Source: Octopus sinensis
Lineage: Eukaryota
Reading direction: 5' to 3'
Length of the DNA stretch: 38,615 bases
Assembly (NCBI RefSeq): GCF_006345805.1
Contig: NW_021835716.1
Span: 1-38,615, forward strand
The notes under the pieces are model-generated. The model was given only the letters and a program-made list of their open reading frames with translations. It was not told the DNA's origin and did no database searches. The position numbers and the translations under genes are program-made. Of this stretch, positions 2,076 through 38,615 are shown piece after piece (position 1 is the stretch's first letter; each line of letters begins with the position of its first letter).

Positions 2076-2823
2076 GAGAATCTATACCAAAAGTATAAGG
2101 TCAAGCTCGAAGTATTTTCCAGATGGATAAAATTGATTTATCTTGATTAAAATATTTCTCAGAATTATGAATAATGGTACAATTTTATGTCATTCCATCA
2201 ATTTTCAATTCGCGAAAAACCGGTCTTGGTAAAGTTGACATTCTTTTGCAGCCATTTGAACGAATTGGAAGTAAATCTGTAAATTGAAAATAATTAAGCC
2301 ACATTAACTACTTCTCAACTCAATGGGACTTTTCACAGACAAGTGTATAATAATGGTATTATTACATTCATTTAAAATCAACATGATTCTTCCACGCAAA
2401 TTTAAAAAATTAAATTATATATTTATTTATATTATTGAGTTTAGCCTATTAAATGGTAAACCTAAAACTGTACAAATTCACATTGCTTAATTAACTGCGT
2501 CAACTAGTCGCATGTTCTTTTATTGCAAATAATTATTATTTTTATTCAAGGACTTGATGCATATTAATATTTGCTCAGAACCTTCCATGAATTAAAAATT
2601 GTTGGTTATGAGTTTGTTTCTCCCAATATTGCGATATGTATTATTCCTTTGTCTATATTTAAAATAATGACCTAATTTTTGAATTCCAGTGGTCAAATAG
2701 ATTCTTGATTTGACCTATTTATAATTTTATTTTTCAGACAATTAATAATTTATTTTTAATGTTTTTTGAGTGCTATTACTCAAACAACATTACTTAATGA
2801 TTATTAATGTTTTTATACTTTTA

Positions 2824-4825: not shown

Positions 4826-5640
4826 CTAAGGCCTGTGGATAAACGATGTTTGCAGTCCGTCCATCCTTGGCAAATATAAATAAATTTCTCTTCTACCTAC
4901 CCTTGAGCACCCCACATACAGCTGGCCATGTGAAAAGCACTCGTTCTCTAAAAATAAGCCTACTACCTTTAAAGACTGTCCCTGGGCCTTGTTTATTGTC
5001 ATAGCAAAACTTATCTTCAGCGGAAATTGTAGTCTCTTAAATCTATCGCAGGCCCTTTCATGGTCCATAATAACGTCGACCGATTTATATATTCTTTCTC
5101 TGCCAGGGATTTTCATTAATAAATCTAAATTTATATTAAGTACCTCATCATTAAGTGGAGCTAATATAGCTCGTTCACGCAGCCAGTCGAAATTCACGTA
5201 GTGTTCAGATAGTTCGGAATAGACGGCATTCAATAATTCTTCTGCTGTTTCTACGAAAATACATAATTCTTCCGGTAGCCTAATTTTCTGGTCGTGCATT
5301 TCTGAAGTGATTGCCCCATTTCCAATATCTAGAAGGATTTGTGGGAATATGCTATTAACGCCTTGTAAATGTGCATGTACATTTACATCTAAGCTTACCT
5401 TTTTCACGTGTGTCCACAAATATGACGATTTGAGGCAGGCATTCAATTCATCCGCAGGCGTCCCTCTTTGAATAATTGGCAGCGTCTGTCTAAAATCACC
5501 TGCCAATACAACTAATGCTCCCCCAAACAAATGGTCGCTACAATTCTTGATATCTCTATATGTTCGGTCAACTGCTTGAATGCGCCTTTATGAGCCATCG
5601 TACATTCATCCCAAACAATTAACCTAGAATGCATAATTCT
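4826..5640 (-). pseudogene. Helitron PIF1-family helicase, truncated, frameshifted and internally deleted
   Basis: IVWDECTMAHK (frameshift) ...FGGALVVLAGDFRQTLPII...CLKSSYLW...RAILAPLNDEV...FKRLQFPLKISFAMTINKAQGQSL...FSHGQLYVGCSRV. The usual segment before RLQFP is missing. Confidence 0.9.
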
Positions 5641-8818: not shown

Positions 8819-8963
8819 AGGATATTCTTTCTTATTAAAATTTTTTGACAGGAAGGTTCTTAGAGGATATCAACCTTTTATTGTGCCTCATTATCGAATA
8901 ACTACAAAAGGGAAGGTTTTGACAATTTGATCTGGTTTGTAACAATTTGAATGTGGGTGTGCC

Positions 8964-9007
8964 ACAGACAGACAGACAGACACACAGACAGACAGACAGA
9001 CACACAC
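8964..9007. repeat. (ACAG)n/(AC)n microsatellite at the Helitron 5' end
   Basis: acagacagacagacagacacacagacagacagacagacacacac, ending about 20 bp inside the TC terminus. Confidence 0.9.
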
Positions 9008-14879: not shown

Positions 14880-15790
14880 ACGAACACCAAAGGGCTATAA
14901 GTCAATACAATTAAATGCGTTCTTCATATCAAGTTTTACTACGATGTAATTTGAATGAAATAGGTGGCAAAAATCGATAAAGTCCTTACGACGTAGATAA
15001 AAGTTTCACAGCCATCCTTGACTTCAAACCCCAGCTGAATGTTTTGAAAAATTTGTGGGAAAAATAGATCTTGCACTCGCAATTTTTGAGATCAGCCTTT
15101 TAAATACGTTACCAATAAAGATTTGTCTAATTCCGCCGTCTTTTTTATACAGTGCAGTCATGTTCCTAGAGAAAAACTAAGAACGGGAAAAATTAGATAA
15201 ATCTCCTTATAGAAAGAGATTTATTACAGAGATCATCGCTAAGATTATTTTTAACAGAAGTACATTCTAATGTGGCTGAGGCGTAGTCTATCGATGCCAC
15301 CACAACTGCTTGGAAATACGACTTTAAACTCCGAAATAATTCGTCCTTTATGACTTTGTGTTTAGGCTAACAAGTCAAATGTGATGGAACAGGATGTAAT
15401 AGGTGTTTTTCGCGAAGCAAATTAAGAATATTTTTAATTCACTCCAGCAATTCGGTTGTCAGAACTCAAAATCCTCAATGCGACAAAGAAATCTTCGACT
15501 ATTAACTTAGTGCGGACTCTTTTCCTGATGGTGCCTTCGGAGGTTAGAAAATTGTCGGGAGGTAACAAATGTTCACTGCCAACCATAGATTCAATGGAGA
15601 ATCGCTATAAGTGACAATAGAATTTTTAATTTTGATGGCCAATAAATCAGGCGAGAGTTTGCTAATGATCAAACTTAAGCTGAAAAAGGTAAAGCAAAAC
15701 ATTTTCGCCCAGTCGTTGTTGCAATTGGTTTGTATTGCTTTGAAAAGCTATCGGAGGCTAGAGTCTAAAATGCGTCAGAATTCTAATTGC
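14880..15790 (-). pseudogene. CRE-clade non-LTR retrotransposon, N-terminal and RT-start portion (decayed)
   Basis: IRKRVRTKLIVEDFFVALRILSSDN; FPSSCGGIDRLRLSHI; MTALYKKDGGIRQIFIGNVFKRLISKIA; QLGFEVKDGCE; VKLDMKNAFNCID. These match the CRE-type pre-RT and RT domains. Confidence 0.75.
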
Positions 15791-15814
15791 GACATGTCAC
15801 AGTCGGTGGTATTT

Positions 15815-16500
15815 GGAAAAATATATCTCACGAGACGCTGGGCCAACCTCGCGAATAGCAAAGCCATTCCCAGAAGTTCCAAAAGCCAGGATGACTCTCT
15901 GGAATCGTGTCTTATTTTTGATATCCGTCGACCGAGGAAGCGAAGGAAGCAAAACATCTTGGGGTAAAAGATTCCCAAACACTCCAAAACAATTGGGGGT
16001 AAAAAGAAGCGAATTCGAGAGGTGGCCCTACTTGAAAACCTTACGATCTTCGGCCAGCCTCAAAACGTGCCAGGATTGACATCGGACAAAGCGAGATTTC
16101 CGCACGAGAACGTTTCCAACCAGGTGGAGTCTCAAATAAGGGATTTCCCTTGCTCGTAAGGAAAGTTGGTCATGCCGTCTGGGCGTTTGCCGGCTCTCTG
16201 AATGATTGCGTTGAGTTCACTGTGGCGAGGGGCACGACCGGCACTCCGACGGCAAGCGGGAGGGACCAAACCGTACTCGTCAACAGCTTCCCCCACGGCG
16301 GTATTTGTGCGTTTGACAGATCTTCAGTTCAACATGGAGGGATATTGCGATTTTTAAGAAATCGTTTTTCGCCAGATTCCTGATGGAAGGGAGAGCCTTT
16401 AACCAAGCACAGCTGCTTTGGCAGCAACCTGCACGTAAGCATGCGAGTCGGTGTTGGGTGGAGACAGAGAGGAGGGCTTCGAAAGTCGCTGTTAGAACTA
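15815..16500 (-). pseudogene. CRE-clade retrotransposon C-terminus with restriction-like endonuclease (decayed)
   Basis: SCAWLKALPS...FLKIAISLHVELKICQTHKY; EAVDEYG...SAGRAPRHSELNAIIQRA; GKRPDGMTNFPYEQGKSLI*DST; LRFLGRRISKIRHDSRESSWL. The RH..N / RPD / WD RLE signature is present. Confidence 0.8.
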
Positions 16501-16609
16501 TAGATCTTATCAAAAGCAAAGTATAGGTCTTCAGGTTTAATGTGGATCTTATCAAAATCAAAGTGGGTCTTAGCAAATGGAACAATAAAATTATTTAATA
16601 AACCATGTC

Positions 16610-17209
16610 ATCATTATTTAGCACCGATGGGGCTAACCTCTGAATTCTAGCAATTACGATGTTGTAAGGAGATAAGGCTCTAATGGATGGCTAGACCGCT
16701 TTAAAAAATGTCATGAACTATTTTTTAGAGCAATATGCAACAATTTATCATATTTTTAAGGGAGACATGGAATCGAGTAACAAAAGACACAATAACTAAT
16801 TGTTGGAATAAAAAATGAATCAAGAATTAATGATTTCTAAATTAATCAAAACATTGCAGATAGAATTTGATGGAACTGAAAATGACTCAATTATATGATG
16901 GGTGTGATACTAAAATTGTGAATCATAACATCAAAGACAAGATGAATATAATGAATATTTTAAAAATTCATTATTAAATGTATGTTCCGAAAGTGAATAT
17001 TATGTTTTAAAATGAATGACTGGCAGAAATCGAGGAAATATTGAAGGGAAAATTAGCGATTCCTTTTTTTAATTGATAAATAAAATGGATTTTTTGATTT
17101 TTAAATGCTATTTTATTTAAAGAAATTAAAGAAAAAGCTGGGAAAAGGGTGTAAATTATCATACCCTCTGTATTTGGGACAGATTTCTATTGGGGCAGGG
17201 GTTCAACTG
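16610..17209 (+). mobile_element. Internally deleted pogo/Tigger remnant
   Basis: Fragments (S)NGWLDRFKKCH (CENP-B HTH) and TWNRVTKDTITNCWNKK (DDE-1 C-terminus). The right end is GGGGCAGGGGTTCAACTG|TA. Confidence 0.6.
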
Positions 17210-17380
17210 TAATATTGGAATTTTACTGGAATTTCCTCCGATTGATATTCCAATAATGAAATAATAAAATTTTTTCTTTATTTTATTGCCTTTTCTGGTT
17301 CATACCTGATATCTTTCAAAGAATAACAGGAACGGTCCAAGTGGACTCGAATGGTTTCTTTTGACACATTTAAGCTGAAA

Positions 17381-17815
17381 GCCCCCTTGGCTGAAGACTA
17401 AGCTATGGATAATGGATCTGGACAGTCGTGAGTTCGATTCCGAAGGAGGCTAGTCTCATCCGGGGGTCAATTCTCGTTATCGTTCCCCTGCCCGTGAGGC
17501 AACGAGTACTTATGGCACGACACAGTTGGAAATGGGGATCTCTTACCTTCCTTCCGGTCTTAGCGTGGCGTTATGGGGTCCACCATGTCAGTTGGAACTT
17601 CCAATCGGATATGGAAACGCTCAGGAGGCACTTAATGCCTACCGAAAAAGGACTTCTAGAACTCTGACCCTGGGACATCGTCGTCTCAGTCCGTTCATTG
17701 TGGGCAGGATCGAACCTTTCAGAAGGATCTCCCTCGCATGAATCGGGGGATCACGGGGGATTATAATTAACTGGCTTACCCTGGTTCTTTGGTCAATAAA
17801 AAGTGTTATTAAAAA
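17381..17815 (+). mobile_element. tRNA-headed SINE-like element or Pol III ncRNA
   Basis: The 70-nt head has acceptor-like pairing GCCCCCT/AGGAGGC (6 of 7), a D-like stem GCT/AGC, an A-box-like TGGCTGAAG and a B-box GAGTTCGATTCC. It is followed by a GC-rich non-coding body and AATAAA with A-rich sequence near 17795. No TSD was found. Confidence 0.55.
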
Positions 17816-21063: not shown

Positions 21064-22292
21064 AACCTATCGTCATGAAAATATTTTTAATTGCGATGAA
21101 ACATCTTTGTATGTTAAAAAATTTCCTTCAAGATCTTATGTCGAATCGATAGAAGCATGTCATGGTACAAAATTCAGTAAAGAAAGAGTAACAGTCCTCC
21201 TTTGCTGTAATGCAGCAGGAAAAAAATTAAGACCTCTTGTTGTTGGAAAATACAAATCACCTCATTGTATGAAAAGTTGGCTTAATTATATTTGAACATA
21301 GATTTTGATTGTGAAAAATTCGGTATTTTATATGCAGCGTCAAAAAATTCCTGGATGAACAGAGAAATTTTCAAAATGTGGCTATCAAAGATTAACGACG
21401 ACTTTCTCTCACAAGATAGAAAAATAATTTTAATAATGGATAATGCTACATGCCATTCTTTATTGGAATACTCAAATGTTAAATTGTTTTTTCTTCCAAA
21501 AAACACAACATCTTTGATTCAACCTCTAGACATGGGTATAATAAAATGTTTTAAAGTATATTACACAAACTTCCTAATGGACTTTATGTTCGATTTGAAA
21601 GAAGATACAACAATTAATCCTAAATCTTTGAAAAATATAGATATGCGACAGATTATGGTACTTGTTAGAAAAGCGTGGATGGAAGTTAAAGAAACAACAA
21701 TAATTAATTGTTGGAAGAAAATTGAGGAAAATAGAGAAGAATTAGTTGAAGATAAAAATTGCGGGGAAGAAGTCCTGGAAGAAATAATAACTGAAGTAAT
21801 ATCTGAAGAAAATGAAGATCTAGTCAAAAGTCGCGAATTTTATAATAAAATTGAGATAGAGGACAAAACAACGATATTAGAAACGTATGAAATGATGGAT
21901 AAGTTGGAAAATGTAGCGCAAAATACATCTTTCGAGACACTCCAAAAATATTACGAGTTTAGATTTTAACTTGGAAAAGATTTAAGAAATAAGAAAAATT
22001 TGAAATTGACTGATTATTTCAAAAAAAATGTTTTAAAAATAATGATTTATTTTAATCAAAATCAAATTAAAAAACAGAATAAAAATCTATCAAACTATAG
22101 AGCAAAAAAGCACAACTTATTGTATTATCGGCATATAAACACTTTGTAAGATGTAAAAGAGTTCTTTGTTCGCAAAGTAAACCAAAATTTAAGTTAAATG
22201 AACTATAATTCAATAGTTTGAACCAGACCCTTGTTTGGAAGGGCACCCCCGCTTTTTAAGGCACTTTGGTGCTCCACCCCGGAGTTGGACTG
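21064..22292 (+). mobile_element. pogo/Tigger transposon, 5'-truncated, with frameshifted DDE-1 transposase (about 21064-21969)
   Basis: NIFNCDETSLY...SKERVTVLLCCNAAG.KLRPLVVGK; SWMNREIF; IILIMDNATCH; FLPKNTTSLIQPLDMGIIK. One frameshift near 21290. The right TIR ends ...GGAGTTGGACTG|TA. Confidence 0.88.
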
Positions 22293-23229: not shown

Positions 23230-25560
23230 GAGGCATTTTCCAGTACATTTAGAGTGAGGCTAACGCCTACGAACAAATTAAAGAAAGAATTCACCCGTCG
23301 AAGAGTTTTGTTCACTTTTTAAAATAATGAATTCTCAACTCTCTGTGATGGTTTGTTTGAATTCTCAACAATTCCCTGACTGGAGATTGTTTGGTCTTAT
23401 TTGACAAATTTAATACTCTTCACCGACATGAAGATGAACTTCTATAAGAAAGGAGTACAAATATATGTTATGAGTAGAGCAACATTTTTATTGACTTAAA
23501 AAAAATAAAAATTGCCCTTAAAAAGTCAATGTAATTGACCATAAAATTTTAAAAATTGACCAAATAATTGACAGTAAAAATACTACTTTATTTTCATATA
23601 TAAACTACGTTTATGAAAATTTAAAGTAATTTTATTCATCGTTTATCGAGTTATTTACAATTAAGTAATATTTTACATTATCCACTTTAAAATTCCTATC
23701 CTTGGTTAAGATTTTGTTAAGAATCGAAAATGATCGTTCTACTGCGCACGATGTTGCCTGACATTCAATCAACAAAGAATAATCTAAAGGTGAAATGGAA
23801 TGATCATCGAAATTCATAATTTTTGTGATATCATTGGAATTCATCCTTTTGATAATATAATTTTTTATTCCACACACGTCTTCTTTAGAATCCAATGTTT
23901 TCAAATAATTGAATGCTTTTTTTATAGTAAAATTGGTCGATTCTAAATCATCAAGCAAATGTAATAAAGGTGAATATTGTGATATTATCGTCGTTGGATC
24001 TTCATGAAGTTGTTCATTAAATAAACATTCTTTCGCTCTTTGTTCTGTGTTTGTTCACAAAAAATTGTTTCTTGCATGTCACATGTAACTCACATAATTT
24101 ACAAAAAAGCATTCCATTTGGTGTAATTGTAAACTCTTTAGGATATTTTTCACAAATATTTTTAGCTTTTTTAAAATCCGAAGGTTTATTTTTAGGCATA
24201 AGTACACTATAATTAAGTTTAAAATTTGTTACAATAAGAGACAAATGTCACTGCGATTATTTTAAATTTATTTTGGTAATCTCCAAATTTAGGCATGCTA
24301 TAAATCTCGACGTATAAGCAATAGATTTTAATTATTTTTTCATTTTTTATTAATTTAAGTTAAATTTAATGGATTTGTCTATTTTTTTAAGAATAAAAAT
24401 TAAGCCGAAAAATCGTATTGTAAACTATTAGGAGCAGAAATTGCAGCACCACTTCAACAATAGACAATTCCATTTAGAATTAGTCATGTTGGCCATTGCA
24501 TTTCACGTTTTTGAGGTATTTTTTTAATTATATGAGAAGTTTGGCGGGAACAATGGTTGAAAGGGTAGGTGGTTGGTTCATTGTTAGTTTATTGACGATG
24601 TGTGTTTTTCTTTAATTTATTAATATTAAATTATTTATTTCTAACAAGGAATTATTTTAATAAAATTTTAATAATTTATTTTCCTGTGGTTTATACCATG
24701 ACTAAAAGTGGAGATTACCTTTATTTTGAGCTTTAAATAATATTATTTAAATTTTTATTTAAAAATTGACCTAATAAAAAACATTGACCTGGAAATCTAA
24801 AAAGTTGACCAAATTGACCTAAAGAACTTTTATATAAACTTTTTTTGACTTTATTTTATTTAATCATTATTTTTAGACTTAAGTCTAACTCTGGATTGAA
24901 TTGACTTATTGACTTATGTTGCCCTAGTTATGAGATGATACTGCCCTGACAATTCCCACAGCCTGGATGAGGGCATCGTAGCCACAGTTTTTGAAAAGTG
25001 GCTAGAACATCTTGAATGATTTGCCTCTGGTTGGGGCCGCTCACAATGTACTGGAGATAGGGGAAATAGAATACCAAATATTTGAACATTATTCCCATTA
25101 GCACAACACCCTGAGCAACAGAAATTCCAATTTCCTGAATCCGTAGCAGTCTACAAGCAAAAAATAAAAGTATCAAAACAGTTATCATAAGTGGAGTGGG
25201 ATCCTAGACATTCCAGAGTCGACTACTTTTGGAAAAAGATATATAAGGCAATCGAGGTCCCGATCTCTTCCTGCATGTACGAGCCCACAATCCACATTGT
25301 ATATTTACTGCTTTGGGCAAATATAATTGACAGTTCTGCGCTAAATCCTTTTCAGTGACAACTCCCAGACGGAGAGCCAGTCGTTGAAGGACTGCACCCA
25401 AAATTGTGGAAACAACGACAGCCACAAGAGCTAGAAATTGCAAAATAGGGACCACTTAATATCCCGCCAACTTCCTGTTCTCAAATCAGATTCAATGTTT
25501 CCCGGTCGACGTATGCGATGCTGACCAAAAAATCTGGACCAAGATAGGCCAAGATTTATA
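23230..25560 (-). pseudogene. Nramp: NRAMP/SLC11 divalent metal transporter gene, disrupted by a hAT insertion and indels
   Basis: SIAYVD(P)GNIESDL, LQRLALRLGVVT, MQEEIGTSIAL, LITV.DTF...YGFRKLE, ALIQAVGIV and SHN|IYLYS split by the insertion. Tiny introns at 25431-25455, 25204-25226 and 25051-25074. The left boundary is approximate. Confidence 0.85.
23475..24926 (-). mobile_element. Internally deleted hAT element (CGGBP1-like), 1452 bp
   Basis: TIR TAG(A/G)GCAACAT. Perfect 8-bp TSD GTTATGAG at 23467-23474 and 24927-24934. Subterminal TTGAC(C/T) arrays. Peptides FCKLCELHVTCKKQFFVNKH (N-terminal zinc finger) and QATSCAVERSFSILNKIL (dimerisation-like). Confidence 0.9.
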
Positions 25561-26739
25561 TAAAAAGCAAAAACCATACTGTGTATGTAAGACCGTCTGA
25601 AACATAAAAAATCAAAACAATATTGTCATAATAAAAACTAATTACAAAATTAAACGTAATGCTCTTTAAAAAAATAAGAGTTCCAGATAAATTTTAGCTT
25701 ATAAATATATTTTTAATCTTTTATTACTATAATTTCTTAAGAAAATAATTAAATATATTTAAGAAATAAGTAATTCTTTCGGAATTTAAAAAATGCCAAT
25801 AATTCAAGTGTGAACTTTACACAAATAAAATTAACAGAAATTAATCAAGATAATAAACTTTTAGATCATTTTTTATTTCATTGAAATTATGTTCTTTTGA
25901 TTAGTGAATATTCAAAATTACCTTGATTTAATTGCTCCCTCATTTCGTTCATTTTTATTAGCTCATTTAAGCAAAAGTTTTCTAATTTTAAATCTGGAGA
26001 ACGAAAAAATATATTTTCAAGATGTTTTATTTTATTTTCTATACATTCGTTGCTGATTCTTAAGCTATCCGAGCGTTCAAATAGTAGCGATATGTACTGC
26101 TTAGAAGCCTTTAAAAGATTACGTCTAGAAATCTATTTACATCAAACGTAAAATTACATTTCTGTCTGAATTTGGATGATTTGATTCAGATTCTGAAAAC
26201 TTTTTTTTATTTTATTTCGTCGTTTTCTTTCTTGATAATTGTGATGAAGGCGTTCATCAATCTAAACGATAAACGAGAGATAGTATTGTTCGTTAACCAA
26301 TTTATCTGAATTAATATCAGAATCATTGTTCTGTTATTAAAGAATTATATTTATTATTGACCTTAAAAAATTTTGCAAATAAATACAATGATTAATTTTT
26401 GATATTTTAAATACAATAAAGGTACCCTAATAAACTCACTAAACTAAGGTACAAGATAAAGACGGGAAAACATTTAAAGTAGACTACAAAGACCATATTT
26501 TTAGGAATTTAACTGTAAATATAAACATCATTATATTCTAGCCCTCCTCTCTCATCCGTGTGCGAGATCCCAGCGGAACAGGCGAAAGAGAGTCACTGTA
26601 GTCAAATTTATGACCTGAGTGAATATACCGTGGGTTATCTAATTAAAAAATAAAAGTTTTGATGACGGAGAAGAGCGGACTTTATCCATAAAACAACTCA
26701 TAATATAAACGAACCAAAATTAGAATATTTTTCTGAAAT

Positions 26740-27220
26740 TGACAAAAATCCAATCGAAGAAAAAATCATCCCCAAAAAAATTGTCCGTAAAAAACAACTA
26801 ATTGGGTTATTTCCCTTCATCTCTAACCACAGTGCCCCAAAGTCATCTTTGACTGAGATTGTGGCCATCGGGGACGTAATTTGGCTAGAACCCTCAGGAG
26901 AGGATGAATTGGCCCATCTTGGCCTGGTCTGTGTAAATTCGGCCCAATTCTTTGGGAGAAGGATCGGTTGGGACACAAGTTCTTGTTTGTTCATTTTACA
27001 ACGATGAATTGTAGAGGGATTGAATAAGAATTAGTGTGGTTGTGGATAAATCTGAGTTGTCTACCTTCAATAGAAGTAAGACAAGGGCACCGTTGAATAC
27101 CAGTTTGTTCAAAGCAGTCGAAAAGGCCTGCATTTATTACGATTTGGACAATCTCCCTGAAAACTGGTCAAAAAACGAATTATTTAGGCCAATCTGGAGA
27201 AACAAACAGTCAGATTGAAT
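26740..27220 (+). pseudogene. PWWP-domain-like gene or gene fragment with indels
   Basis: IVAIGDVIW followed by a shifted (R)MNWP, then VVDKSELSTFNRSK...SLFKAVEKA, resembling the start and end of a PWWP domain. Candidate 27-nt intron GTTATTTCC...CCACAG upstream. Boundaries are uncertain. Confidence 0.4.
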
Positions 27221-27786
27221 TAAGCAATGTAAATGGATTAATTTATTCAAGTCTGTGTATTATTCCTCGTCCTCTGACGAACATTGCGATCGAGAACACA
27301 AGGATTGTTTTGTGGCTCATTTCTACAAGTTTTTTGAAGACTGTGCTTCGTCGATAACCACCACTCCTATGCTTGGTGAAAAGAACTTGATTTCTACGAA
27401 TTTTTTCGAGTGGTAAAAACTACGGAGATATAAGAAGGTCATAAATGTGTAATAAAAAAGGTTTCCCGCGATACAAAGTGCATTTTGTTCTGGAGAAAAT
27501 GAAGGATTACGAATGTGAGACTCACCAAACAAGCCTATATAAGTAATCTACGATTCATATTTTAATAGATTTTGAGTCAATTTGAAGATTTTAATAAAAA
27601 ATTTGGGTTTGTTGTCCACAATAGATCGACGGGTATTATTTCCGGTGCTTCTGGAGGGAGAATAACGTGAGAGTAATTCGACAGTCCTTCACTCCACGAA
27701 AGTTCGAGATTTTATTATTTGTGTAGAAAAGAGTATTTTTGCATTCCAAATGACCACAAATCCAACACCGCGAAAAAAATTTCAAA

Positions 27787-29002
27787 ATGGGTCAAATTTT
27801 AGTTTTAATATTTTTTAGGAGTTGAGTCGTTTTTGAAAGATGAGGAGTACTGCAGGTTGATATCAATACATTTTGGTGGGAAATGTGTTTGAAATATTGT
27901 CAGAGGACTCGAACATGTCCTACAAAGTGAAGGTAGTCATTTCTGGTGATTAGAAGGTCTCGGCAGTGGAAGAAAAAGAGGACGGGAAGCACTACACAGT
28001 CCACTACGTTGGCTGGAATTTTGACGGAAATGTTAGTTTTTTAGAATCGATTTGACGAGGTTTTTGACGAAGTGACTCTGTGGTTGTTTTTAAGACAAGT
28101 GAAGAGTAATTTTGTGGGAATGCGGACAGTTTGTGAGAGTTCTCAATGTACATCAGAAGGTGTCGATAAAAGTGTATTTCAGTTTCAGAAAATGCAGTTG
28201 ATTTGGCTAGTGAGGCAAGACTTTGTGAGGATAAAATGGATGTTTCTAATGAGAGTAAAAAAGAACAGGGAGAACACATAAATGTCCAATATGTCCAACC
28301 CAGTTCATATATTCCATATTTGGTCCAAAGTAAATTTGATATAAGAATTGGAGATTTGAGAGAGCTTAGTGATGACAGTGACAGAATGAACTTTATTCGA
28401 GAGTTTAATAAGAAGGTGTTAGATTTGGGTATTTGAAATGGGGGTGATGTGGTAGAGGAAGAAGATATGCTTACAGTCCAAAGCACCCCGAGTAGTGGCA
28501 GTACAACTTAAAAATCATCAACCGAGTAATCACATTGATCACCCAACTCCAAATGCGGGCCATGTGTTCTCTCAATTTGGTTTCCCTGGCCATTCGAGAA
28601 AGTGTGGACAACTGTCAATTTCAATGCAACTACAATTTCCCATCACAAATAATCCACGTAACTATTCCCCCCAATGACGAATTTGGCTATACTTCCCTTC
28701 ATCAATGAGGAAATGGCCGCCAGTCTCCACACCCAATCGGCACCAGTACTGGAAGGGAAAACTGACAAAACGTTGGTCTGTCCTTGCGGGGTGTGTTGGA
28801 GGAGGAAGAATAGGAGGAAGTTATGTTGAGATTTGTCTCCCAAATAGGCAGGGAGGAGAGAAGCATATTCTGCCAGGCAATAGAGCTGTTCGGGTGGGAG
28901 GACTCGATAATTATATATTATACTTGCAATTTGCTCACTAAACACCCCGATGGACTATTAAAAATTGTCGGGAATTATTTCATCCATCAACACCAAGGTT
29001 GA
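27787..29002 (+). CDS. MRG-family (MRG15/MSL3/Eaf3-like) chromo-barrel + MRG domain gene, multi-exon, possibly damaged
   Basis: After removing introns 27791-27818 and 27933-27953: MGVESFLKDEEYC...YKVKKVSAVEEKEDGKHYTVHYVGWN..RFDE (Tudor-knot). Downstream IRESVDNCQFQCNYNFPSQII and MLRFVSQIG resemble MRG-domain helices. The exon structure is only partly resolved. Confidence 0.6.
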
Positions 29003-29011
29003 TCAATGAAT

Positions 29012-29509
29012 TTAGTAAACATCTTGTTTTTCCATGTCGGCATCCATTGTATGTATTTTGTATAACCATCGCCCAAAACTAATAGGCTTGGCCGCAAAAT
29101 ACGGAGAATTCAGCACGCGCAGTATATTCCCTTCTAATCGTGGGACACCAATTGTCCTCTGATCATTAACAAGCTCGATATTCCTACGAATGCGACAATT
29201 CAGACTCAATCGGGTTAAACTGAGTCGTTGTAGTACAACAGATAAGCGCTTTTTAAAATTAGGTTTGGCCTTTTTAAACCGACAAGTAATCTCTCTGATC
29301 ACGCAGTGACACTTGTGTGCTATTCCAGTCATTTCATTATTTAATCCCCTTTGCTGACAAATCATATCCTCCAAAACACGAGGCACAATCCATCTCGACA
29401 AGCAAAAACTTATTTCCATGATAATAAAAATATGAACATTCCAAATTAATCTTTTTGAACTTTCGAATATCGGCAAGGAAGGGTCTTGGTGTATTCTCGA
29501 CAATTCCAT
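29012..29509 (-). CDS. Hypothetical protein, 165 aa, no family recognised
   Basis: Uninterrupted ATG-started ORF filling the gap between the MRG-like and PXK-like genes. No motif was recognised. Confidence 0.4.
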   Translation of the reverse strand: MELSRIHQDPSLPIFESSKRLIWNVHIFIIMEISFCLSRWIVPRVLEDMICQQRGLNNEMTGIAHKCHCVIREITCRFKKAKPNFKKRLSVVLQRLSLTRLSLNCRIRRNIELVNDQRTIGVPRLEGNILRVLNSPYFAAKPISFGRWLYKIHTMDADMEKQDVY

Positions 29510-29569
29510 TGATGGATGGGGGGCAGGGAAGACAGAGACTCCTCTTTCACATCCGAGTTACTCTCCTTC

Positions 29570-31240
29570 GAGGAAATTTGTTTCTAGTCATTTCTCCACT
29601 CAAAACAGACTTTATGGCGAGATAATATTTTGTTCCTTTCTTCTCGAGGAAAGTGAGGACACCTTGTTTGTATGCTTACCTTTTTTATCTGGAAACTGAC
29701 TTAACAAATACAGTCTTCCGATCACCGATGAGGCGTTGCAGCCAACTGGCCGAGTGGGCCTCGAGCAATCCCTGCATTTTGGTGGGACGTGGATAGGATT
29801 GGAGACATACTCGTCGGACACATTTCGGTAGTATCTGTGGGGTGAGAACGCACACTACTTGAATTTGGACAAGTTTTGGAATGACGGAATGCCCGACTTG
29901 AGTGTCTGCTTTCCCAAAACGGCGGAGAGGACGAGCACTAGAAATAAGTGGCATGTCTACTGGTCTTTGAAGTGGACTGACTCAACGTCGACGAATGTTT
30001 CCATGAGAAATCGCCCGGTGGCAGCCTCGTAGAGCATGTGTGCGTACAAATACACGTCGAATGCGGTGGCGGACTACCTCGACACTCCCACCAACCTTAA
30101 TACTGCCGTGATCCACGCACAGAGGTCAATGAAAAGACGAGACACCCAAGGGAACTTTCTGTTTCGACCAGTTTGAAGATGCCGTTGATGAAGAAGACAT
30201 TTCCGAGATGGACATTGCCATGGAACAGTCCGTGGGCGTGCAAGTACTCGAGGGCACGGAGGATGTGGAGACCCAACGTGTTGATACCCGAGGACGGGAG
30301 AGGAGTGTTCGGTCCACTCATTTTGCGGATGAGAGAAGGCGTTCATCTTGTTCTTGCCAATCCCGGACTGACCCGTTGGGGAGAAGACGTGTTGTGGAGT
30401 ACATTCCCGACACTGCAAAGTGGGAGGACACGACGGGGACGATGAACTGGCACTGGTGGTCACAATTGGCACACACCTGGAACTTTTGAGTGAGGACGAC
30501 TTCGACAGTGATTGGGGACTGTGGGGAAGTACTCGTCTGGGTGGCGAGAAGGGAGTACGAAGGACAGCAGGTAGTTGGTCTTGCAGTGGGAGACCTTCGA
30601 CACAACAAAGTAGTTCTTGGACCCCCCGCCAACCAATGTCTGCCAGGAGACGATGGACAGTCCAGTTGTTTGTCGCTGTGGAAGAAGATAAAGGCATTTT
30701 CGGAGTGGAGGTCGGGGTGAGGGAGGACTACTGTTTATGTTTCGACTCTCTTCTCGTACGTCTCCAAGACCTCCCGGACAACCCAATAGCAGGAGAGCAG
30801 TTTGTCCTCCAACACCCATTGAGGAATATTGCATGTCACCTCATCACTCATACATGCAAATCCCCCAGTCTTTTCTGCACAAATTGGGCATCCAGTTTCC
30901 CTATCACTTTTTTTGGGGGAGTGACGGGGTCTGCGGGTGCACTTTGCTGAGTTTGGAGTGGAGGGCCTCGAACTGGCTGGAAAAATATTTTTCCAGTTCT
31001 CTGTTTTTATAATAAGAATGATTGACACTTTCGATGACATTCCAGAATATGCTGGGTTGAATTGGTGGAATTGGAAGAAACCAAACGGAATCCTCCATCT
31101 GCACCAACCTCTGTCCTGCCTTCAAACCTCGAACGTAGGTAACCCCATCCTGTCCTTTAAATACTTTTATCTTTTGTGGCTCTGATGACGAGGAATCTAC
31201 AGGCTCACAAAATAGACAAACCAGACACCGTCGGTCCACT
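29570..31240 (-). pseudogene. PXK: PXK-like gene (PX domain + pseudokinase) with many tiny introns and several indels
   Basis: SQFEALHSKL...SLP(P)KKVIGKLDAQFVQKRLGDL (PX); WTVHRLLADIGWR|SKNYFVV; CQFIVPV...RLLPNGSVRD; LHILRALEYLHAHGLFHGNVHLGNVFF; FDVYLYAHMLYEAATGR; SGIPSF. These are colinear with PXK. Introns at 30537-30558, 30453-30476, 30074-30095, 29938-29960, 29835-29858 and 29689-29711. Confidence 0.82.
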
Positions 31241-33759
31241 CGAGTTATCTATTAACTATACCCTGTTTTCTCCGTGTCGCGGGAAACGTCCAAAATCCCT
31301 AAAATAATACAAGTGGACATACCTTCCGTTGTCTTGAATGTCAGAGGAGGAGTGACTGAGTGGCCTTTCGTTGATTATAACTAAAGATCGTAAAAACGAA
31401 AATCAAACGATCACAAAATACTCTGATCAGCCACAGGAAGTGCATATTTATTTTTAGCGGATTCCTATATTTGTGATTAACCATCAAATTACAGTAAATG
31501 TCTCAACATTGTTCTTGATGTGCCCTATATGGATAAATTTACTAATTTTTACCCTCTGAATTTCATTATTTTAAAAACTCGAGTAATGGTGAACGTCCTG
31601 TGCAAATCATCAACATCTTTCATGTCCGTTATTTCAGTAATGTTTGCCGAATGAAGTGTCCTTGTAACATTCCCACCACAAACGAGTTTTGCATTTATTT
31701 CCTTCCATCTATTAAAAACAACACCATTCCTTGCCGGAGTGATAATTTAATATTCGCAATTTAATGCAATCTCGGAATAAACGCGCAAACATTGTTCTAT
31801 ACTTCCAACCGGTCCCGAATGACGGTCTAATAGTCAGAAGACCAGGATTTTAAATCATCGCATATGTCATCATACAAATACCCCGATATCATTTTAGACA
31901 GTCCTCCACGACGACCCGTCTTCCAAAACTAAAAACAACAATCACCTTCGATGTAAATTTGAAGGCAGATTAAAAATTCCCTGTTTATTAGTCAATGTCG
32001 TAAATGTCTCCACGTCATCTGATGGATATAAAAGTGGCTTCTTATTGGACAGTTTTAACGGAAACGAATTTGCAGTATCTGGAAACCAAAGAGAAGAGAT
32101 CTATTTGTCCAATCTCACAAATGATGTACCTTTCTAGCCAGAGTATAAGAACCATCACTGCCGACATCAAAGTAGTTATTAGTTTCACTTTCTCGATATG
32201 AATTAAGCAAATTAGTAAACGAACTCAAATTTGAATCAAAAACCGAGACTAAATATTTTATACAAATATAAACTGAGTGGTAATGGAGTGCTAAATCAGG
32301 ACGACAGAATCGTTAGAATTCATTTCAAACTGACGGACAATACGGAGTCGCAGGGATTCCAATACTTTGAGACGAATGTCAAGAATACCATTCAAACTAC
32401 GACAGTCAATTAAGATATACATACATAGATTTATTGATAAACCAATGTGGATATATACTATGTTCTGTTATCCCATTTGACACACTAATCGGGTAATACA
32501 GTCGTTGCAAATTATTATCCGACCTCTCCAGTTCATTCAAGACAGACACAATTTTCATTTGCTATCATGACTTTACAACACTTTACATTATTGTAGCCTT
32601 CATCACTAATATTCGCACCTCGGATTAGACCCCCGTTCTTCGATCGGTTCTTTATTTCCTCCACCTTCCGAGAAAGTATCGACAATCCGATTGTATGAAA
32701 AGGACGTGATCGAGGATGTTTTACAACAACCATTCAACACCATCCACCACCTCTTCTACACTCCTCTCCAATCATAACTAATCTAAATTAGTTCTCCAAA
32801 ATCCAACATCATCCTTTGGTGTATTTACTAATTTCTGATATTTATCAACGTAGTCTCATCACCAGTCTTGGGTTTCCGAGTACAAGTAACTGTCTCCAAA
32901 AGGCCTATTTCAGTAACAAAGTCAGATTTTACCGAAAATTCATTCCAAGCATCAACATACATTGGCTAAAGTTGGCTTGCAGAATGGAAATCATCTTCTT
33001 AGCTGTTGGTAGTTCGAAGAACGGTGGATTTCATTAACCCATTTCTGTTTCTTTATCGACCACAGTCGACTCATGAAGAAAGGAGGAACATAATTCTCCA
33101 ACTGAATCATTCTATGATCGACTGAGATAGATAAATATACTTCGCACACAAAAAATTATTAAGCTCGTTCGATTTACTAAAAAAATTCCATTTCGGCTCG
33201 TTTTGACAGAGAACAAGTCAGACAAGAGTGCCTTCCTGTCGGCATGCGAATTCTTATTTCTCCGAGTACTTATTTATATACTCATGAGAATCCCTCCCTA
33301 TATATGACTAGTATCAGGACTAAATACCGAGAACATACAACTCTCTCCAATTCACCCCTCTCTGGATTCGACGGGGGAGGTGAAGGAAAAATTTGTCTTT
33401 ACCTTTGATCACTGTCGGACTGGAATGAGGCCATTCATTCGTAGGAGTACAATTTTGTGGACTTTGACGTTCACTCTGGTGCCGTCACTCTTTCTGAGTA
33501 GAAGATTGTTCACATCCTTCCCACCCGGCAGCTCATTGGCTAAGACATCATAAGATAACCCATACTTTTATCCCCTTTTATTTCGAGAGAGATCATCTAC
33601 ATGATATTTATATATCATACATTTTTAGGATTTATTTTTATAGAAATACCGATCTGCTTGTATCATTAGCTGAAATATTAATTTCGACAAAATACCTTTT
33701 CGTGTTGAATATAACTAAGTTTTTTGGACATGTTTGAACCCTCGTCTGTCAGGGTCTCA

Positions 33760-34290
33760 GTTACGGAGAAAGCACGATAAATATCCGAATTTTTGCCCGA
33801 AGATCAACCAAACTCCTCTCACACTCAATTCGACACGACCACTCAATTAGTCGTTTAAGTTTGCAGTTTGGTCGAATAATACACGTCATCCGAGGATTCG
33901 AACGACTACAAATAAAGAATGTGCTTACATCACAACTCTGCCCTGGCATATAGTATTTTTCCTCTCATTTCTATCCCTCCCCAGTAAAGATTCTTTCAAC
34001 CAAATCATGAACCCCCACAATCTACATCTCTGAGAACTCAATTCATACCATAAAACTCCTGCAGGCAGAACAACCCAAACTTGGCCAGAATCAGGCAAAC
34101 TGGAAACACATTCGGAGTGGAATGCAGCACAACATTGGTGACAATTCATCAGATTGTTAGCTCTGCCATAAATTCTAAAGAAACAAACTTTCCACATTCT
34201 CGACACTCGGTTATAACCAGGAATTAGCCGATGAGTCACATAATACTCACAATGCTCACATATAAACTCAATATGAGTAATTTCCTCCAT
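33760..34290 (-). pseudogene. PHD-finger protein gene or fragment
   Basis: Removing a 34-nt and a 26-nt (34163-34188) GT-AG intron gives YYCRECGKANNLMNCHQCCAAFHSECVSSLPDSGQVW(G)CSACR, a canonical PHD spacing. One frameshift is needed at the Trp. Confidence 0.6.
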
Positions 34291-34949
34291 TTTGAGAAAA
34301 GGAGAGAGATTGACTCAGACACTCATCAAGTTAGGAGAAACTGAGTTTTTAGGGAGAGAATTGGCATAGAGATATCATGTGAATTATTTAATAAAACACG
34401 TTATGACCCTACATAAAAGCTAATCCGGGTGCCCTAGTTAAAAGGCATCGAATTATTAAATTGATTAATTAAATTAATCGACCGGTAATTAATTAACGTG
34501 CTTTATCTGGGTGTCACACTTATAGTGGTCCCAACTCAAAAAATTACAATTTCCTTTCCTCATTAAAAATATAATTCAACATCAAACATTTTTTTAAGAA
34601 AATTTCAAAAATACACAAATCAAGGGTCGGAGCAACAATGAAAACGCCTAAATATGAAAGAACAAACCAAACTTTCATTCAAATCTTTATAATTTGAATG
34701 ACAACACATTTTCTTAGCACCTCCACTACACCCAATACACACACCAAACTACCTCACAGCCGAAACCACATCTACTGGGCTCATTTGACGATCTGATAAG
34801 ATTAATAACGACCAATAAAACTGAAAGGAAGAGTACACTCCTTTTTGAAGACTGAGTGGGGCGTAATAAAGTGTACAGGGGCATGAGAATATTTCCAGGA
34901 ATAGGAGGCGTACATTATTCGAACATTATAGCCACCCTATCCACTCACA

Positions 34950-36090
34950 AATATGAATACCAATTGGAATCCTGAGGCAAATATGGATAAAGTTCCAAAT
35001 GGTAGATTCCCTGCATCACAAGCAGCTACTCGCTCATTCGGTCCACTGCGAGGATTTTCCTCAGCGAAAACATGAAATTATTAACATCCTGCTGATAGAT
35101 TTGATATGAATCCAAATTTGGAACACTTTGGGGACGATTTTAGAATCTAATATGAGCATCAAAATCCACTTTTATGGCAATGTTTTGTTCAAATCTTTCA
35201 CTGAATATCGCGACGGATTTTTTGACCGTTTTTCCGGTAGCCTCAGTAAATTTAGAAGCATTCTGAAAGATTGAAATGGCCATATTTATACCTTGAGCTT
35301 CCAGTGAGTCGTTTTTTTCAAAAAACAGAGGAACCTTCTTTCCAGACATGAGCATTGCGTCGTTGGGAATGCCCAATGCAGAACATATATCATCGAATTG
35401 CTCATACTGTTGGCTCCGGGAATATAGACCAACCAGTGACAACTCTGCCATAATACAGCCGAGAGACCACATCGATGGGACATCCATACTCACAACCCAA
35501 AATAACCTCGGTGCCCTACATCATAATCACCAGAATGACCGGTATATCCCGATTGTAAGTAAAAGGAGTCGCTTATTCGATTACAATATACCGCAGAGCC
35601 AAAGTCAATAACTTTAATGTGGAATGGATATTCTTGGGGGTTAACCAGCATGATATTCTCCCTGCTTTAAATCAGTGGTGTAATCCCGAGGTATGAAAGC
35701 TTTATTAATGCTTTAAGAACCGATTTGTCAGATATTGAATACTTGAAAGGTAATTGCCCGAATGCCGTATTGGAATTGGAGAAAATGCATTATTTCTCAT
35801 GAAATCATACAAATTGATCGAAAGCAGTTCAAACACAATAAAAACGTGGCCTGCGTGTTCAAAATGGTCGAGAATAGAATTATGTGGTCTTGCCTCAAAT
35901 CCGACACAGCATTGTTGATACATTTAGCAAGGATATCTATAATATTATTTATGACGAACCTCGAATAGTCCTTGACGTTTATGAATCGGATTTTTCTTTC
36001 CAAAACTTTGATTGCAAACTCGACGATTAGTTTCATATTGCCAGGCTACTACTACTTGCCCAAACGTACCCCTCCACAGATAATCACTCA
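34950..36090 (-). pseudogene. HIPK: HIPK-like (CMGC/DYRK-group) protein kinase domain, heavily frameshifted
   Basis: RGTFGQVV, AIKVL, RQGLFE|ISLL, HVFIVFELLSINLYDFMRNNAFSPIP, DLK.ENIMLV.P.EYPFHIKVIDFGSA, YR|APEVILG, WSLGCIMAEL, LRKILAVD. Introns at 35937-35959 and 35516-35539. Confidence 0.8.
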
Positions 36091-36936
36091 CAATATAATG
36101 ACAAGTCATTGATTTTAACATCTGATAAATTAATCACATTTTACTTCATATCTTTCTAAATATATTCATCTAATCCCACTGACTGCCCAATATTCAAGTC
36201 GGCTGTCTCTAATCTCCTCGTCCATTCCATGACATTTGGTAGAGTTGTCTGCCTTCCCCATAGACTAGAACAATTTAATGGCCATAATATTTATCGAATT
36301 AAGGCTTTAGAGATTCCTTAATCGATAAGGAAAGTTTTAAATGTCATTTAGCATATTGAAAAATTCTGATTTTTTTTTAGTCAATTTAATGCTGAATAAA
36401 TACCTTTGATGGGTTAGAGATATCCGCCCGAGTTGTCTTGTCTTACTTTGTGGATTTTGTTCTTTTTACTAATTTATATTCAAACTGTAGTGAGGATGAG
36501 AATACATTCCAAAGATTATTTTAATGGCTTTTACCTGATAAAGTATTTATATTTAAACGATAAAAATAAAAATGCTAAATGGCGTCATTTTCGTAATTAA
36601 ATAAAACAAAATAATTCAATGCGTAATTATATTTTGAATACCTGATCATTCACTCCGATATGTTTTCTATCAAGAATTTAGAATTGATCAGCAATTAATG
36701 ACTATTTCAGTTGCTAGGAATTTCGCACATTGTTATCGATGTTGGCCAATCATTCCATTATGTAGTTTTTGGCATCTTGACAACTACGAAGTGGGTTTAA
36801 TTTTTTGCTTAATTAATGGCTGTTATAATTCAGCAAATTTACAGAGCCATTTGTGGGTCAAAGAATGCTATTTATTTGTTCTAACAATAATTTTTATTCA
36901 ATTTCAACCAATAATGGCATGCTTTTAATTTCAATA

Positions 36937-38615
36937 CAGTACGACCCGGTTTGGGGCAGACCCCATGGGTGGGGCACCCTCGGTTTTGGGGCACCCCCGC
37001 TTTTAGGGGCAGTTTTTTTGAAAACCGTAATTTTTCATTCTATTATTTATTTTTGATGACCCCGGTTTGGGGCACTTTTTAAATTTATTTAATTACAAAA
37101 TGTTAGTTTATTTATTAATTATAATTATACTATTATTTCACGTGTTTATTTTGACTTAGTATGGTTCGTAAAATAATTCAAAGATAATTATGAAACAAAA
37201 ATTAAATCGCTAAAGATATAAAACATGGTCAATTTTCAGAAGAGAGATCTTGCTAAAAAGTATACAACGAGCAAAGGTATCTTTTTTAACTAATTATTAA
37301 TTACAGGTACTATTTTTCTCGCATTAAAACAAAATTTTGTTTTTATTTTGACGCGGGATTAACTGAATCCGATAAATCAGGAATCACATGATCCAACAGC
37401 AGGTGTTCTCAACCGGGGGCGAATCGCCCCCCTAGGGGCGAAAATTTTGTACAAGGGGGCGATCAATTTTGTACAGGGGGGCGAGCATAATATTTTAATA
37501 AAAAAAAATTTATATTTATTAAAAATTGTTTAATTAGAATATTTTTAATGGCAAGCCTAATAATTTAGACTCAAAATTTAATGAAATACAATTCTTCTTC
37601 AAGGAATTTTGTCAACATGATTGATTGCAAAAGAATATGGAAACATTTGAAAAAAATTATTGCTTTATCGACATAATTTTTCTAAAATCAGTTTGGAAAC
37701 ATTTCACAACTATCTGAGATAAGTAAAATTTTAGTCAAAACAATATTTTGACATATTGTCAACATTTGACGGAACTAGAAGCGGATATATCTCTTAGATT
37801 CAAAGATTTGTTTGATTTGGAATTTGAAGCATGGATGAGTGATCCGTTTTCATGTGTGCCAAAAGATATGAACGAAACAATCCAAGAAGAGATATTGAAT
37901 TTAATATAATGAAGAATATATTCACAGATTTCAACAGGATGGTATCTCTAAATTTGGCAATCAAAAGATCTACAAATGAAATTTCCAAATTTATGGAAGG
38001 AAATGAGTAATGTACTATTGACATTCCCTACCACTTATTTGGTTGAAAGTGGATTTAGTTTTGTCAATCATAATAACAATGTGAAAAAAATAGACTGAAG
38101 TGTGGTTATAGAGGCGATATACGCCTAAAGTTGAGCAGATTAAACCCGACATAGAATATTTAGCGAGTAAACATCAATATCAAGGGTCTTCACTAATATT
38201 TTTAATAAAAATTCAATTTTTTACATTTGATTTATAATTTTATATTTTGATTTTGAGTTATGTACAAAAACAACCAATTAAGGGACAATGCCAAAATTTT
38301 TTAAATTGTAGTGGACAAGGGGGCGATAAAATTTCAAAGGGGGGCGACAAATTCTAAGGGGGCGATGAACAAAAAAGGTTGAGAATGCCTGATCCAAATA
38401 ATGAATTAGATAGATTAGTTTTGTGAAACTTTTCTACGTCTGAGAGATGAATTTCTTCCAATTTCTGGAACTATCTTAAAACTGATTGCAAAAAATTATC
38501 TAAAAGATAATTATGAATCATTTAAGGCATCAAATGGATGGCTAGACCGGTTCAAGAAAAGACACGAGTTGCTATTTAAAACTATAAGTTGGAGAAAGAA
38601 TTCATCTGACCTTTC
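36937..38615 (+). mobile_element. pogo/Tigger element (runs off the window end) interrupted by a hAT
   Basis: TA|CAGTACGACCCGGTTTGGGGCA left end with GGGCA-rich subterminal motifs shared with 22241-22270. After the hAT it resumes as LIAKKLSKDNYESFKASNGWLDRFKKRHELLFKTI (CENP-B HTH). Confidence 0.75.
37400..38391 (+). mobile_element. Non-autonomous Buster/Charlie-type hAT element
   Basis: TIR CAGGTGTTCTCAACC / GGTTGAGAATGCCTG (13 of 15). GGGGGCGA subterminal repeats at both ends. C-terminal remnant LLTFPTTYLVESGFSFV...DIRLKLSRLNPDIEYLASKHQ. The TSD is only partial (ATCCAA). Confidence 0.82.

Follow-up and report, generated by a model that had tools for sequence, protein, structure and literature searches.

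Five segments of 23-29 nucleotides (nt) in contig NW_021835716.1 of the Octopus sinensis assembly GCF_006345805.1 lie at the same residue and in the same phase as introns of orthologous animal genes, where the orthologues carry introns of hundreds to thousands of bases. The window is the whole 38,615-nt stretch, and the gene segments under study lie at 24.9-36.2 kb. An initial annotation had listed 14 introns of 21-28 nt in this region, distributed over five genes: NRAMP, MRG-like, PX-kinase-like, PHD and HIPK-like. The analysis described here very probably places ancestral U2-type introns, shrunk to 21-29 nt, in frame-broken copies of these genes. Animal introns below 30 nt have already been published for Dicyemida and Myxobolidae, and the window reveals no new splicing mode. 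The finding added here is that the gene cluster is frame-broken. The five genes cannot be translated from this sequence, and the copy is either dead or badly assembled.

Mini-introns at orthologue intron positions

Proteins were aligned to the window with a GeneWise-like program written for this analysis that permits GT-AG introns together with 1-2 nt frameshifts. The orthologue panels comprised 40 HIPK and 20 NRAMP proteins. Intron position and phase were compared by fetching the orthologue genomic loci and mapping each protein onto its own locus. The two relics covered by these panels and the introns placed in them are as follows.

24927..25642, minus strand: NRAMP relic (Pfam Nramp, 61 bits, above cut-off, profile positions 2-154 of 357)
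25431..25455, minus strand: intron of 25 nt, phase 0, before 'LLW'; the exact choice with 18 of 20 orthologues
25204..25226, minus strand: intron of 23 nt, phase 2, in the K codon of 'K-IPL'; placed by the alignment of P0122
25051..25074, minus strand: intron of 24 nt, phase 0, at GYE|YV; the choice of 14 of 20 orthologues
34960..36130, minus strand: HIPK-like kinase-domain relic; top matches are animal HIPKs at 42-44% identity
35516..35539, minus strand: intron of 24 nt, phase 2, in the R codon of YYR|APE; the exact choice with 40 of 40 orthologues
35263..35291, minus strand: additional intron of 29 nt, phase 0, after 'WKLK' (GTATAAATATGGCCATTTCAATCTTTCAG); chosen by alignment and missing from the initial list
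35937..35959, minus strand: candidate intron in the alpha-C helix; for 34 of 40 orthologues the alignment takes the acceptor at 35937

P0122, an animal NRAMP encoded in GCA_021869535.1, has a 497-nt phase-0 intron at ARFK|LLW, a 706-nt phase-2 intron at LLSNG[K]IPLY and a 3370-nt phase-0 intron at FGYE|YVV, which match 25431-25455, 25204-25226 and 25051-25074, respectively. All three NRAMP mini-introns (3/3) therefore coincide, with equal phases, with three of the four P0122 introns in the ~200 aligned codons (P0122/L004). A rough estimate of the probability of this agreement by chance is ~1e-7, based on 4 intron slots among ~600. The segment at 25204-25226 was picked with 1/20 NRAMP orthologues overall because the flanking loop is variable.

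The HIPK-like gene gave the same result at two positions. The segment at 35516-35539 holds two in-frame stops and interrupts the invariant YYRAPE motif, and the HIPK genes of Nematostella, Ephydatia and Trichuris (a cnidarian, a sponge and a nematode) have a phase-2 intron at the same R residue. The additional segment at 35263-35291 reads GTA...TTTCAG, and a phase-0 intron after W[KMR]L[KR] is common to the same three genes. No intron is present at the alpha-C candidate position in Nematostella, Ephydatia or Trichuris HIPK, and the donor of this candidate is ambiguous (35955, giving 19 nt, with 28/40 orthologues; 35959, giving 23 nt, with 6/40). The animal affinity of the genes proposed in the initial annotation is borne out by the HIPK matches, and the positions it nominated as ancestral, HIPK YYR|APE and NRAMP GYE|YV, agree with orthologue introns in both residue and phase. 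We firmly regard the three NRAMP segments, 35516-35539 and 35263-35291 as genuine ancestral introns that are presumably spliced, because residue and phase coincide with orthologue introns. The proposal of miniaturised spliceosomal introns holds for these five segments.

The listed segments were also compared as a set with the 158 other GT..AG pairs lying 21-28 nt apart on the same strand of the same genes. All 14 are GT...AG on the sense strand and have the lengths originally claimed (21-28 nt); together with 35263-35291, the 15 segments of this one window span 21-29 nt with a median of ~24 nt. A pyrimidine (Y) occupies position -3 in 14/14 compared to 40% of the background pairs (P ~ 1e-5), and the additional segment likewise ends in YAG. 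Adenine at +3 (GTA) occurs in 7/14, or 50%, versus 11% (P ~ 2e-4), and pyrimidines make up 70% of positions -8 to -3 versus 43% (P < 1e-5). Positions +4 to +6 of the 14 are without consensus. There is a weak peak of A upstream of the AG, at -9 in 7/14 and at -8 in 5/14, and 'AA' within -16 to -8 is not in excess (50% in the segments, 45% in the background). As a set, the 14 segments bear real splice signals beyond the terminal dinucleotides, which corrects the earlier impression that almost no such signal exists. A scan of the whole window for GTA...Y-rich-YAG was discarded as a detector of introns; the pattern is equally frequent in AT-rich intergenic DNA and in genes.

These data suggest a mechanism in which ordinary U2-type GT-AG spliceosomal introns would have shrunk to 21-29 nt and been inherited at ancestral metazoan positions. 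A reduced signal would have been kept: in most cases an A next to the GT, a pyrimidine at -3, a 3' end with a short pyrimidine-rich stretch, and possibly an A some 8-9 nt ahead of the AG. The gene cluster would, more likely than not, have decayed, acquiring insertions and deletions (indels) across all five genes, with NRAMP cut half-way. The introns would belong to the class found in myxobolid myxozoans and dicyemids, and the AT-rich setting, rich in DNA transposons, would fit the genome of such a parasite.

Two further features were observed in the HIPK-like gene. A possible additional mini-intron of 28 nt lies at 35894-35921 on the minus strand (GTATCAAC...TTTGAG, with GAG rather than YAG); were it excised, the alpha-C candidate would be followed by a micro-exon of 15 nt, 'ISLLN', and one 66-nt intron or a frameshift are alternatives. 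At 35720-35790 on the minus strand, the HIPK motif 'FSPLPLKY' occurs twice in tandem in different frames, as 'FSPIPIRH' followed by 'FGQLPFKY', which looks like a diverged duplication of ~24 nt, about the size of an intron.

Frame lesions across the gene cluster

With the listed segments excised, none of the genes reads through in one frame. The earlier statement that homology resumes exactly upon excision is true in part and overstated; all of the genes additionally require 1-2 nt corrections of a kind that introns cannot provide. Indels of 1-2 nt occur roughly every 75 nt in the exons (~1.3%), with ~20 sites in total in the HIPK-like and NRAMP genes. They include both extra and missing bases, mostly missing, and shift the frame in both directions. 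The median NRAMP alignment has 9 frameshifts in ~0.65 kb and 1-2 in-frame stops, and the median HIPK alignment has 11 frameshifts over ~0.8 kb and 0 in-frame stops in the kinase core. Ten of the HIPK-like frameshift sites are recurrent, each appearing in 25-40 of the 40 alignments, and the shifted stretches are the most conserved motifs of the domain: 'FAIKVLERK' (VAIK), 'TTDLKQ' (catalytic loop), '(AP)E-VILG' and 'GWSIFP' (GW..P). Models with introns and no frameshifts were rejected; they scored 350 versus 419 for HIPK and 121 versus 233 for NRAMP and lost conserved motifs. The exon lengths between conserved introns likewise appear to leave the wrong remainder modulo 3 unless the indels are undone. 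Reassignment of TAA/TAG or TGA as sense codons was rejected as a cause, the breaks being frame changes in both directions that run through invariant motifs.

The NRAMP gene is also truncated. The N-terminal half alone is present, with homology stopping at 'SSHN*' near 24927, which corresponds to the MPHN motif, and the C-terminal half was not found anywhere in the window by tblastn with full-length NRAMPs. The DNA beyond the end of NRAMP, to ~22600, is AT-rich, and hAT-like fragments were noted there by eye at 23635-24247 without Pfam confirmation.

We lean modestly towards decay as the explanation: a small gene cluster would be present here as a copy that no longer functions and is degenerating amid transposon-rich DNA, for example as a redundant duplicate. 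Lesions are equally dense in the five genes, which are unrelated to one another, and this would suit a single segment, duplicated or silenced, in which all of them decay together. A pseudogene with ~5% substitutions and an indel-rich spectrum would be compatible with every figure obtained. Several results weigh against decay. After frame correction, 86% (HIPK) and 79% (NRAMP) of the columns that are >=95% conserved among orthologues match, a retention at or just below that of the orthologue that diverges most (leave-one-out minima 0.81 and 0.89). Nearly every catalytic and zinc-binding residue is kept. Indels make up almost the whole set of lesions, stops being very rare (0-2) compared to ~20 frameshifts. 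This retention of residues resembles a working gene viewed through indel noise. A further result of this kind comes from the satellite in the window, which differs between copies by ~1% indels, mostly in homopolymers.

The same observations suit a different cause, which we consider a tenable but tentative alternative: the introns would be those described above, in genes that are whole and functional in the organism, and the ~1.3% indels would be leftover long-read consensus errors in single-copy DNA that was less corrected than the multi-copy transposons. Lesions confined to indels and dominated by missing bases, the retained conserved residues and GT-AG/YAG signals, and the similar lesion density of unrelated genes are all consistent with such errors. 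Published candidate source assemblies are built on long reads, lightly polished or merged with an Illumina assembly; they were made with PacBio + Racon, with 24x Oxford Nanopore reads (ONT) + Medaka, or with Falcon merged with Platanus (PMC13644364, PMC11557904, PMC6736024). Transposons make up most of the window (reverse transcriptase, PIF1-type helicase, Tc1 with a helix-turn-helix (HTH) domain and DDE_3, and pogo with DDE_1 and Tc5 HTH); their frames and the satellite are as follows.

2808-4199, plus strand: RVT_1 reverse transcriptase, largely intact frame (Pfam)
4829-5587, minus strand: PIF1-like (Helitron-type) helicase, largely intact frame (Pfam)
6343-8786: 95-nt satellite, 25.8 copies, 96% identity
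9596-10688, minus strand: Tc1 transposase (HTH_Tnp_Tc3_2 + DDE_3), with one in-frame stop and one shift
21065-21966, plus strand: pogo DDE_1, largely intact frame (Pfam)
About 38420-38613, plus strand: Tc5-type HTH at the window end (Pfam)

A uniform assembly error rate is excluded because the open reading frames (ORFs) of the transposons are far cleaner. They contain ~3 frameshifts and 2 stops in ~4 kb, compared to ~1 frameshift per 75 nt in the genes, a difference of ~15 times. Five Pfam-confirmed transposon ORFs of 447-1392 nt, ~3.8 kb in all, are unbroken by any frameshift, where ~50 would be expected at the rate seen in the genes. A uniform homopolymer error was rejected as well; the homopolymer content of these ORFs is at least that of the genes. 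Several gene lesions are 2-nt events or lie outside homopolymers, and the truncation of NRAMP is not explicable as an indel error. In the satellite, the differences between copies comprise 25 indel cells and 39 substitution cells, with many 1-nt changes in T7 and G5 runs. No intact host gene was found in the window to serve as an internal control; Pfam searches of the ORFs at 26.7-29.5, 32.5-33 and 15.6-18.4 kb gave nothing usable.

A cause other than decay or assembly error is unlikely. Real genomic indels in genes that still work, with transcripts or translation mended at ~10 places in each gene through nuclear insertion/deletion editing, slippage of the polymerase or frameshifting by the ribosome, would if true explain residues and splice sites that look selected beside a broken DNA frame, and are extremely improbable; insertional RNA editing in particular is unlikely, as extra as well as missing bases occur.

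A dead gene cluster and ~1% indel errors in the single-copy regions of an assembly would each depress gene counts and BUSCO scores. The locus calls for a frameshift-aware approach, and to annotate genomes of this kind the minimum intron length in gene finders has to be lowered to ~15-20 nt.

Candidate introns in the other genes

The remaining relics and the candidate introns within them are as follows.

27750..28100, plus strand: MRG/MSL3-type chromo-barrel relic ('HYTVHYVGWN'; Pfam MSL3_chromo-like E = 0.054, below cut-off)
27791..27818, plus strand: candidate intron of 28 nt with GT..TAG ends and a T-rich 3' end; no homologue extends over the junction
27933..27953, plus strand: candidate intron of 21 nt, weakly supported
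29600..31240, minus strand: PX domain and kinase-like relic ('PXK-like'; Pfam PX 33.5 bits, above cut-off, and Pkinase 20 bits, below cut-off)
30537..30558, minus strand: candidate intron of 22 nt, GTA..CAG with a C-rich 3' end; open frame of 32 codons before and 72 after excision
30453..30476, minus strand: doubtful candidate intron of 24 nt, splice-like ends alone
30074..30095, minus strand: candidate intron of 22 nt, GT..TAG; open frame of 7 codons before and 45 after excision
29938..29960, minus strand: candidate intron of 23 nt, GTA..ATTTCTAG; open frame of 1 codon before and 84 after excision
29835..29858, minus strand: candidate intron of 24 nt, GTA..CCCCACAG; open frame of 1 codon before and 74 after excision
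29689..29711, minus strand: candidate intron of 23 nt, GTA..GTTTCCAG; open frame of 8 codons before and 34 after excision
33925..34290, minus strand: PHD-finger relic (Pfam PHD 20.7 bits, below cut-off)
34163..34188, minus strand: candidate intron of 26 nt between 'CRECGK' and 'ANNLMNCHQC', with PHD-like spacing on excision

The chromo-barrel relic is matched weakly by the plant MRG2 chromodomain in the PDB (E = 0.024), and this match is contiguous across the spliced junction of 27933-27953. If that segment is left in, the frame closes after 6 codons. A frame change ahead of 'NRFDEVF' can be read from the sequence. A search of 5.8 billion proteins gave no homologue of the PX-kinase gene at E <= 1e-3; the PX part of the gene resembles the Nischarin PX domain weakly (E = 0.006), and solely after frame correction. 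The PX motif 'LPPKKVIGK' requires a shift at the C5A7 run near 30910. The candidate at 30453-30476 is doubtful: its length is divisible by three, it is stop-free, and the ORF continues across it. Excision of 34163-34188 yields the spacing C-x2-C...C-x2-C-x4-H-x2-C, and the final W-x-C-x2-C of the PHD finger is off-frame, with one T missing near 34075 in a three-frame reading.

Several results weigh against the interpretation of the segments as introns. There are 172 GT...AG pairs 21-28 nt apart in the 4.5 kb of sense strand, and 44% of the 158 non-listed pairs lengthen the open frame by >= 20 codons when excised. The gain in open frame produced by the 14 listed segments is not significantly above this background (P = 0.05-0.08). 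Decoy alignments with all 256 dinucleotide pairs, frameshifts allowed, did not make GT-AG clearly superior; it ranked 27th, 1st and 51st of 256 in HIPK and 13th and 23rd in NRAMP. The nine segments of the MRG-like, PX-kinase and PHD genes were assigned by resemblance to splice signals, and removal of any segment from mRNA is deduced from DNA. Neither frame restoration alone nor alignment score alone exceeds chance. The decoy-boundary test is a weak one because boundaries that slide absorb adjacent frameshifts, and local exhaustive excision scans are affected likewise.

That the segments are chance GT...AG pairs which merely seem to restore the frame is nevertheless very improbable. Distant orthologues have an intron at the same residue and in the same phase as five of them, the enrichment of YAG, GTA and pyrimidines is significant against exactly this background of pairs, and 35516-35539 breaks an invariant motif and carries stops. 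Chance may account for individual unverified members of the list, such as 30453-30476.

Other features of these genes and of the window were noted. On the minus strand just downstream of the PX-kinase gene, 29012-29509 is an open frame of 165 amino acids with no Pfam family, which could belong to a further host gene or have arisen by chance in DNA that is richer in GC (guanine plus cytosine). Downstream of the PHD finger, 8-9 GTA...YAG segments of 19-31 nt cluster at 33100-33930 on the minus strand. They may represent more exons and introns of the PHD gene, and no homology was found for this cluster. A (CAGA)n-type microsatellite at 8963-9006 adjoins the satellite. A GC-richer block (~40%) at 15500-17700 has overlapping open frames of ~100-118 amino acids on both strands with no Pfam match and may be an unclassified repeat. 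Rfam and tRNA scans detected no rRNA or tRNA in the window. Look-ups of ORFs of the window as exact proteins returned no match, and neither a near-identical protein nor such a contig was found in the databases. The GC content is ~34% overall and 28-30% between genes.

Comparison with known mini-intron genomes

The comparison of position and phase with sponge, cnidarian, nematode and other animal orthologues is an independent test, made on sequence alone, and it confirms that introns of animals can become as short as 21-29 nt without leaving their ancestral sites. The same conclusion was previously published for dicyemids and then, in 2026, for myxobolid myxozoans. We infer the source taxon of the window, as well as the cause of its frame breaks, from the comparisons given here. 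The initial annotation had suggested a myxozoan or a dicyemid, which is sensible in that this size class is published only for myxobolids and dicyemids (PMC13644364, PMC6543705, PMC6736024). The special length-defined mechanism attached to that suggestion is speculation; the literature describes a conserved U2 branch-site region, with U2 small nuclear RNA and U2AF retained in such genomes (PMC13644364).

In Myxobolidae (Henneguya salminicola, Thelohanellus kitauei and Myxobolus spp.) the median intron length is 22-27 nt, and it is similar in Dicyema japonicum (PMC13644364, Mol Biol Evol 2026). In the myxobolid introns little more than 'GTa' is left of the 5' site, A residues are weakly represented ahead of the AG, and positions are conserved (PMC13644364). 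The segments described here are alike in length class, GT-AG ends, reduced donor, conserved positions and possibly the weak upstream A. The genomes are alike in being AT-rich (29% GC reported for H. salminicola versus 28-30% in the intergenic DNA here) and in the abundance of DNA transposons, which is a feature of Myxobolus, with Tc1/pogo accounting for 12% in M. rasmusseni (PMC11557904). The myxobolid length distribution is genome-wide and is compared here with 15 introns from one window. Unlike the genes of the window, no frame-broken genes are described in the myxobolid paper (PMC13644364).

Dicyemids share a median of ~27 nt, conserved exon-intron positions and a repeat-rich genome (49% repeats). 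In Dicyema sp., introns have a median of 27 nt and fall below 30 nt in two thirds of cases (PMC6543705), and the mean intron of D. japonicum is 38 nt (PMC6736024). Dicyemid mini-introns are also attributed to Ogino et al. 2010, as cited in PMC6736024 and PMC6543705. Dicyema japonicum is reported to keep just 'AG' at the 3' site (PMC13644364), in contrast to the YAG and pyrimidine-rich run in all 15 segments here, and the dicyemid GC content of 36.7% is somewhat above the ~34% of the window and the value between its genes. We lean slightly towards a myxobolid over a dicyemid source, by analogy, because of the YAG and pyrimidine run, the 28-30% GC of the intergenic DNA and the abundant DNA transposons. 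A third animal lineage with introns below 30 nt, outside Myxobolidae and Dicyemida, is a doubtful source for the contig.

Mini-introns are classic in ciliates (Paramecium ~25 nt, Stentor 15-16 nt) and also occur in nucleomorphs and microsporidia. The segments resemble them as GT-AG introns of 15-30 nt with minimal signals, and some apparent in-frame stops of the HIPK-like gene are TAA. A non-animal eukaryote such as a ciliate, with tiny introns and a changed genetic code that would turn the stops and shifts into effects of code or recoding, is still scarcely credible: the gene content differs, the top HIPK matches are animal HIPKs, the intron positions are common to sponge, cnidarian and nematode genes, the two-way frame changes inside VAIK, DLK and APE cannot be mended by codon reassignment, TGA, TAA and TAG are all present off-frame, and the Tc1, pogo, reverse transcriptase and PIF1 ORFs read in the standard code.

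The remaining comparison is with unprocessed pseudogenes and decaying segmental duplicates. The gene cluster resembles these in its introns, which are still in place, its many frameshifts, its truncated gene, its transposon-rich setting and the similar lesion density of neighbouring genes. It differs from the usual pseudogene in having few stops relative to frameshifts and conserved residues that are well kept.

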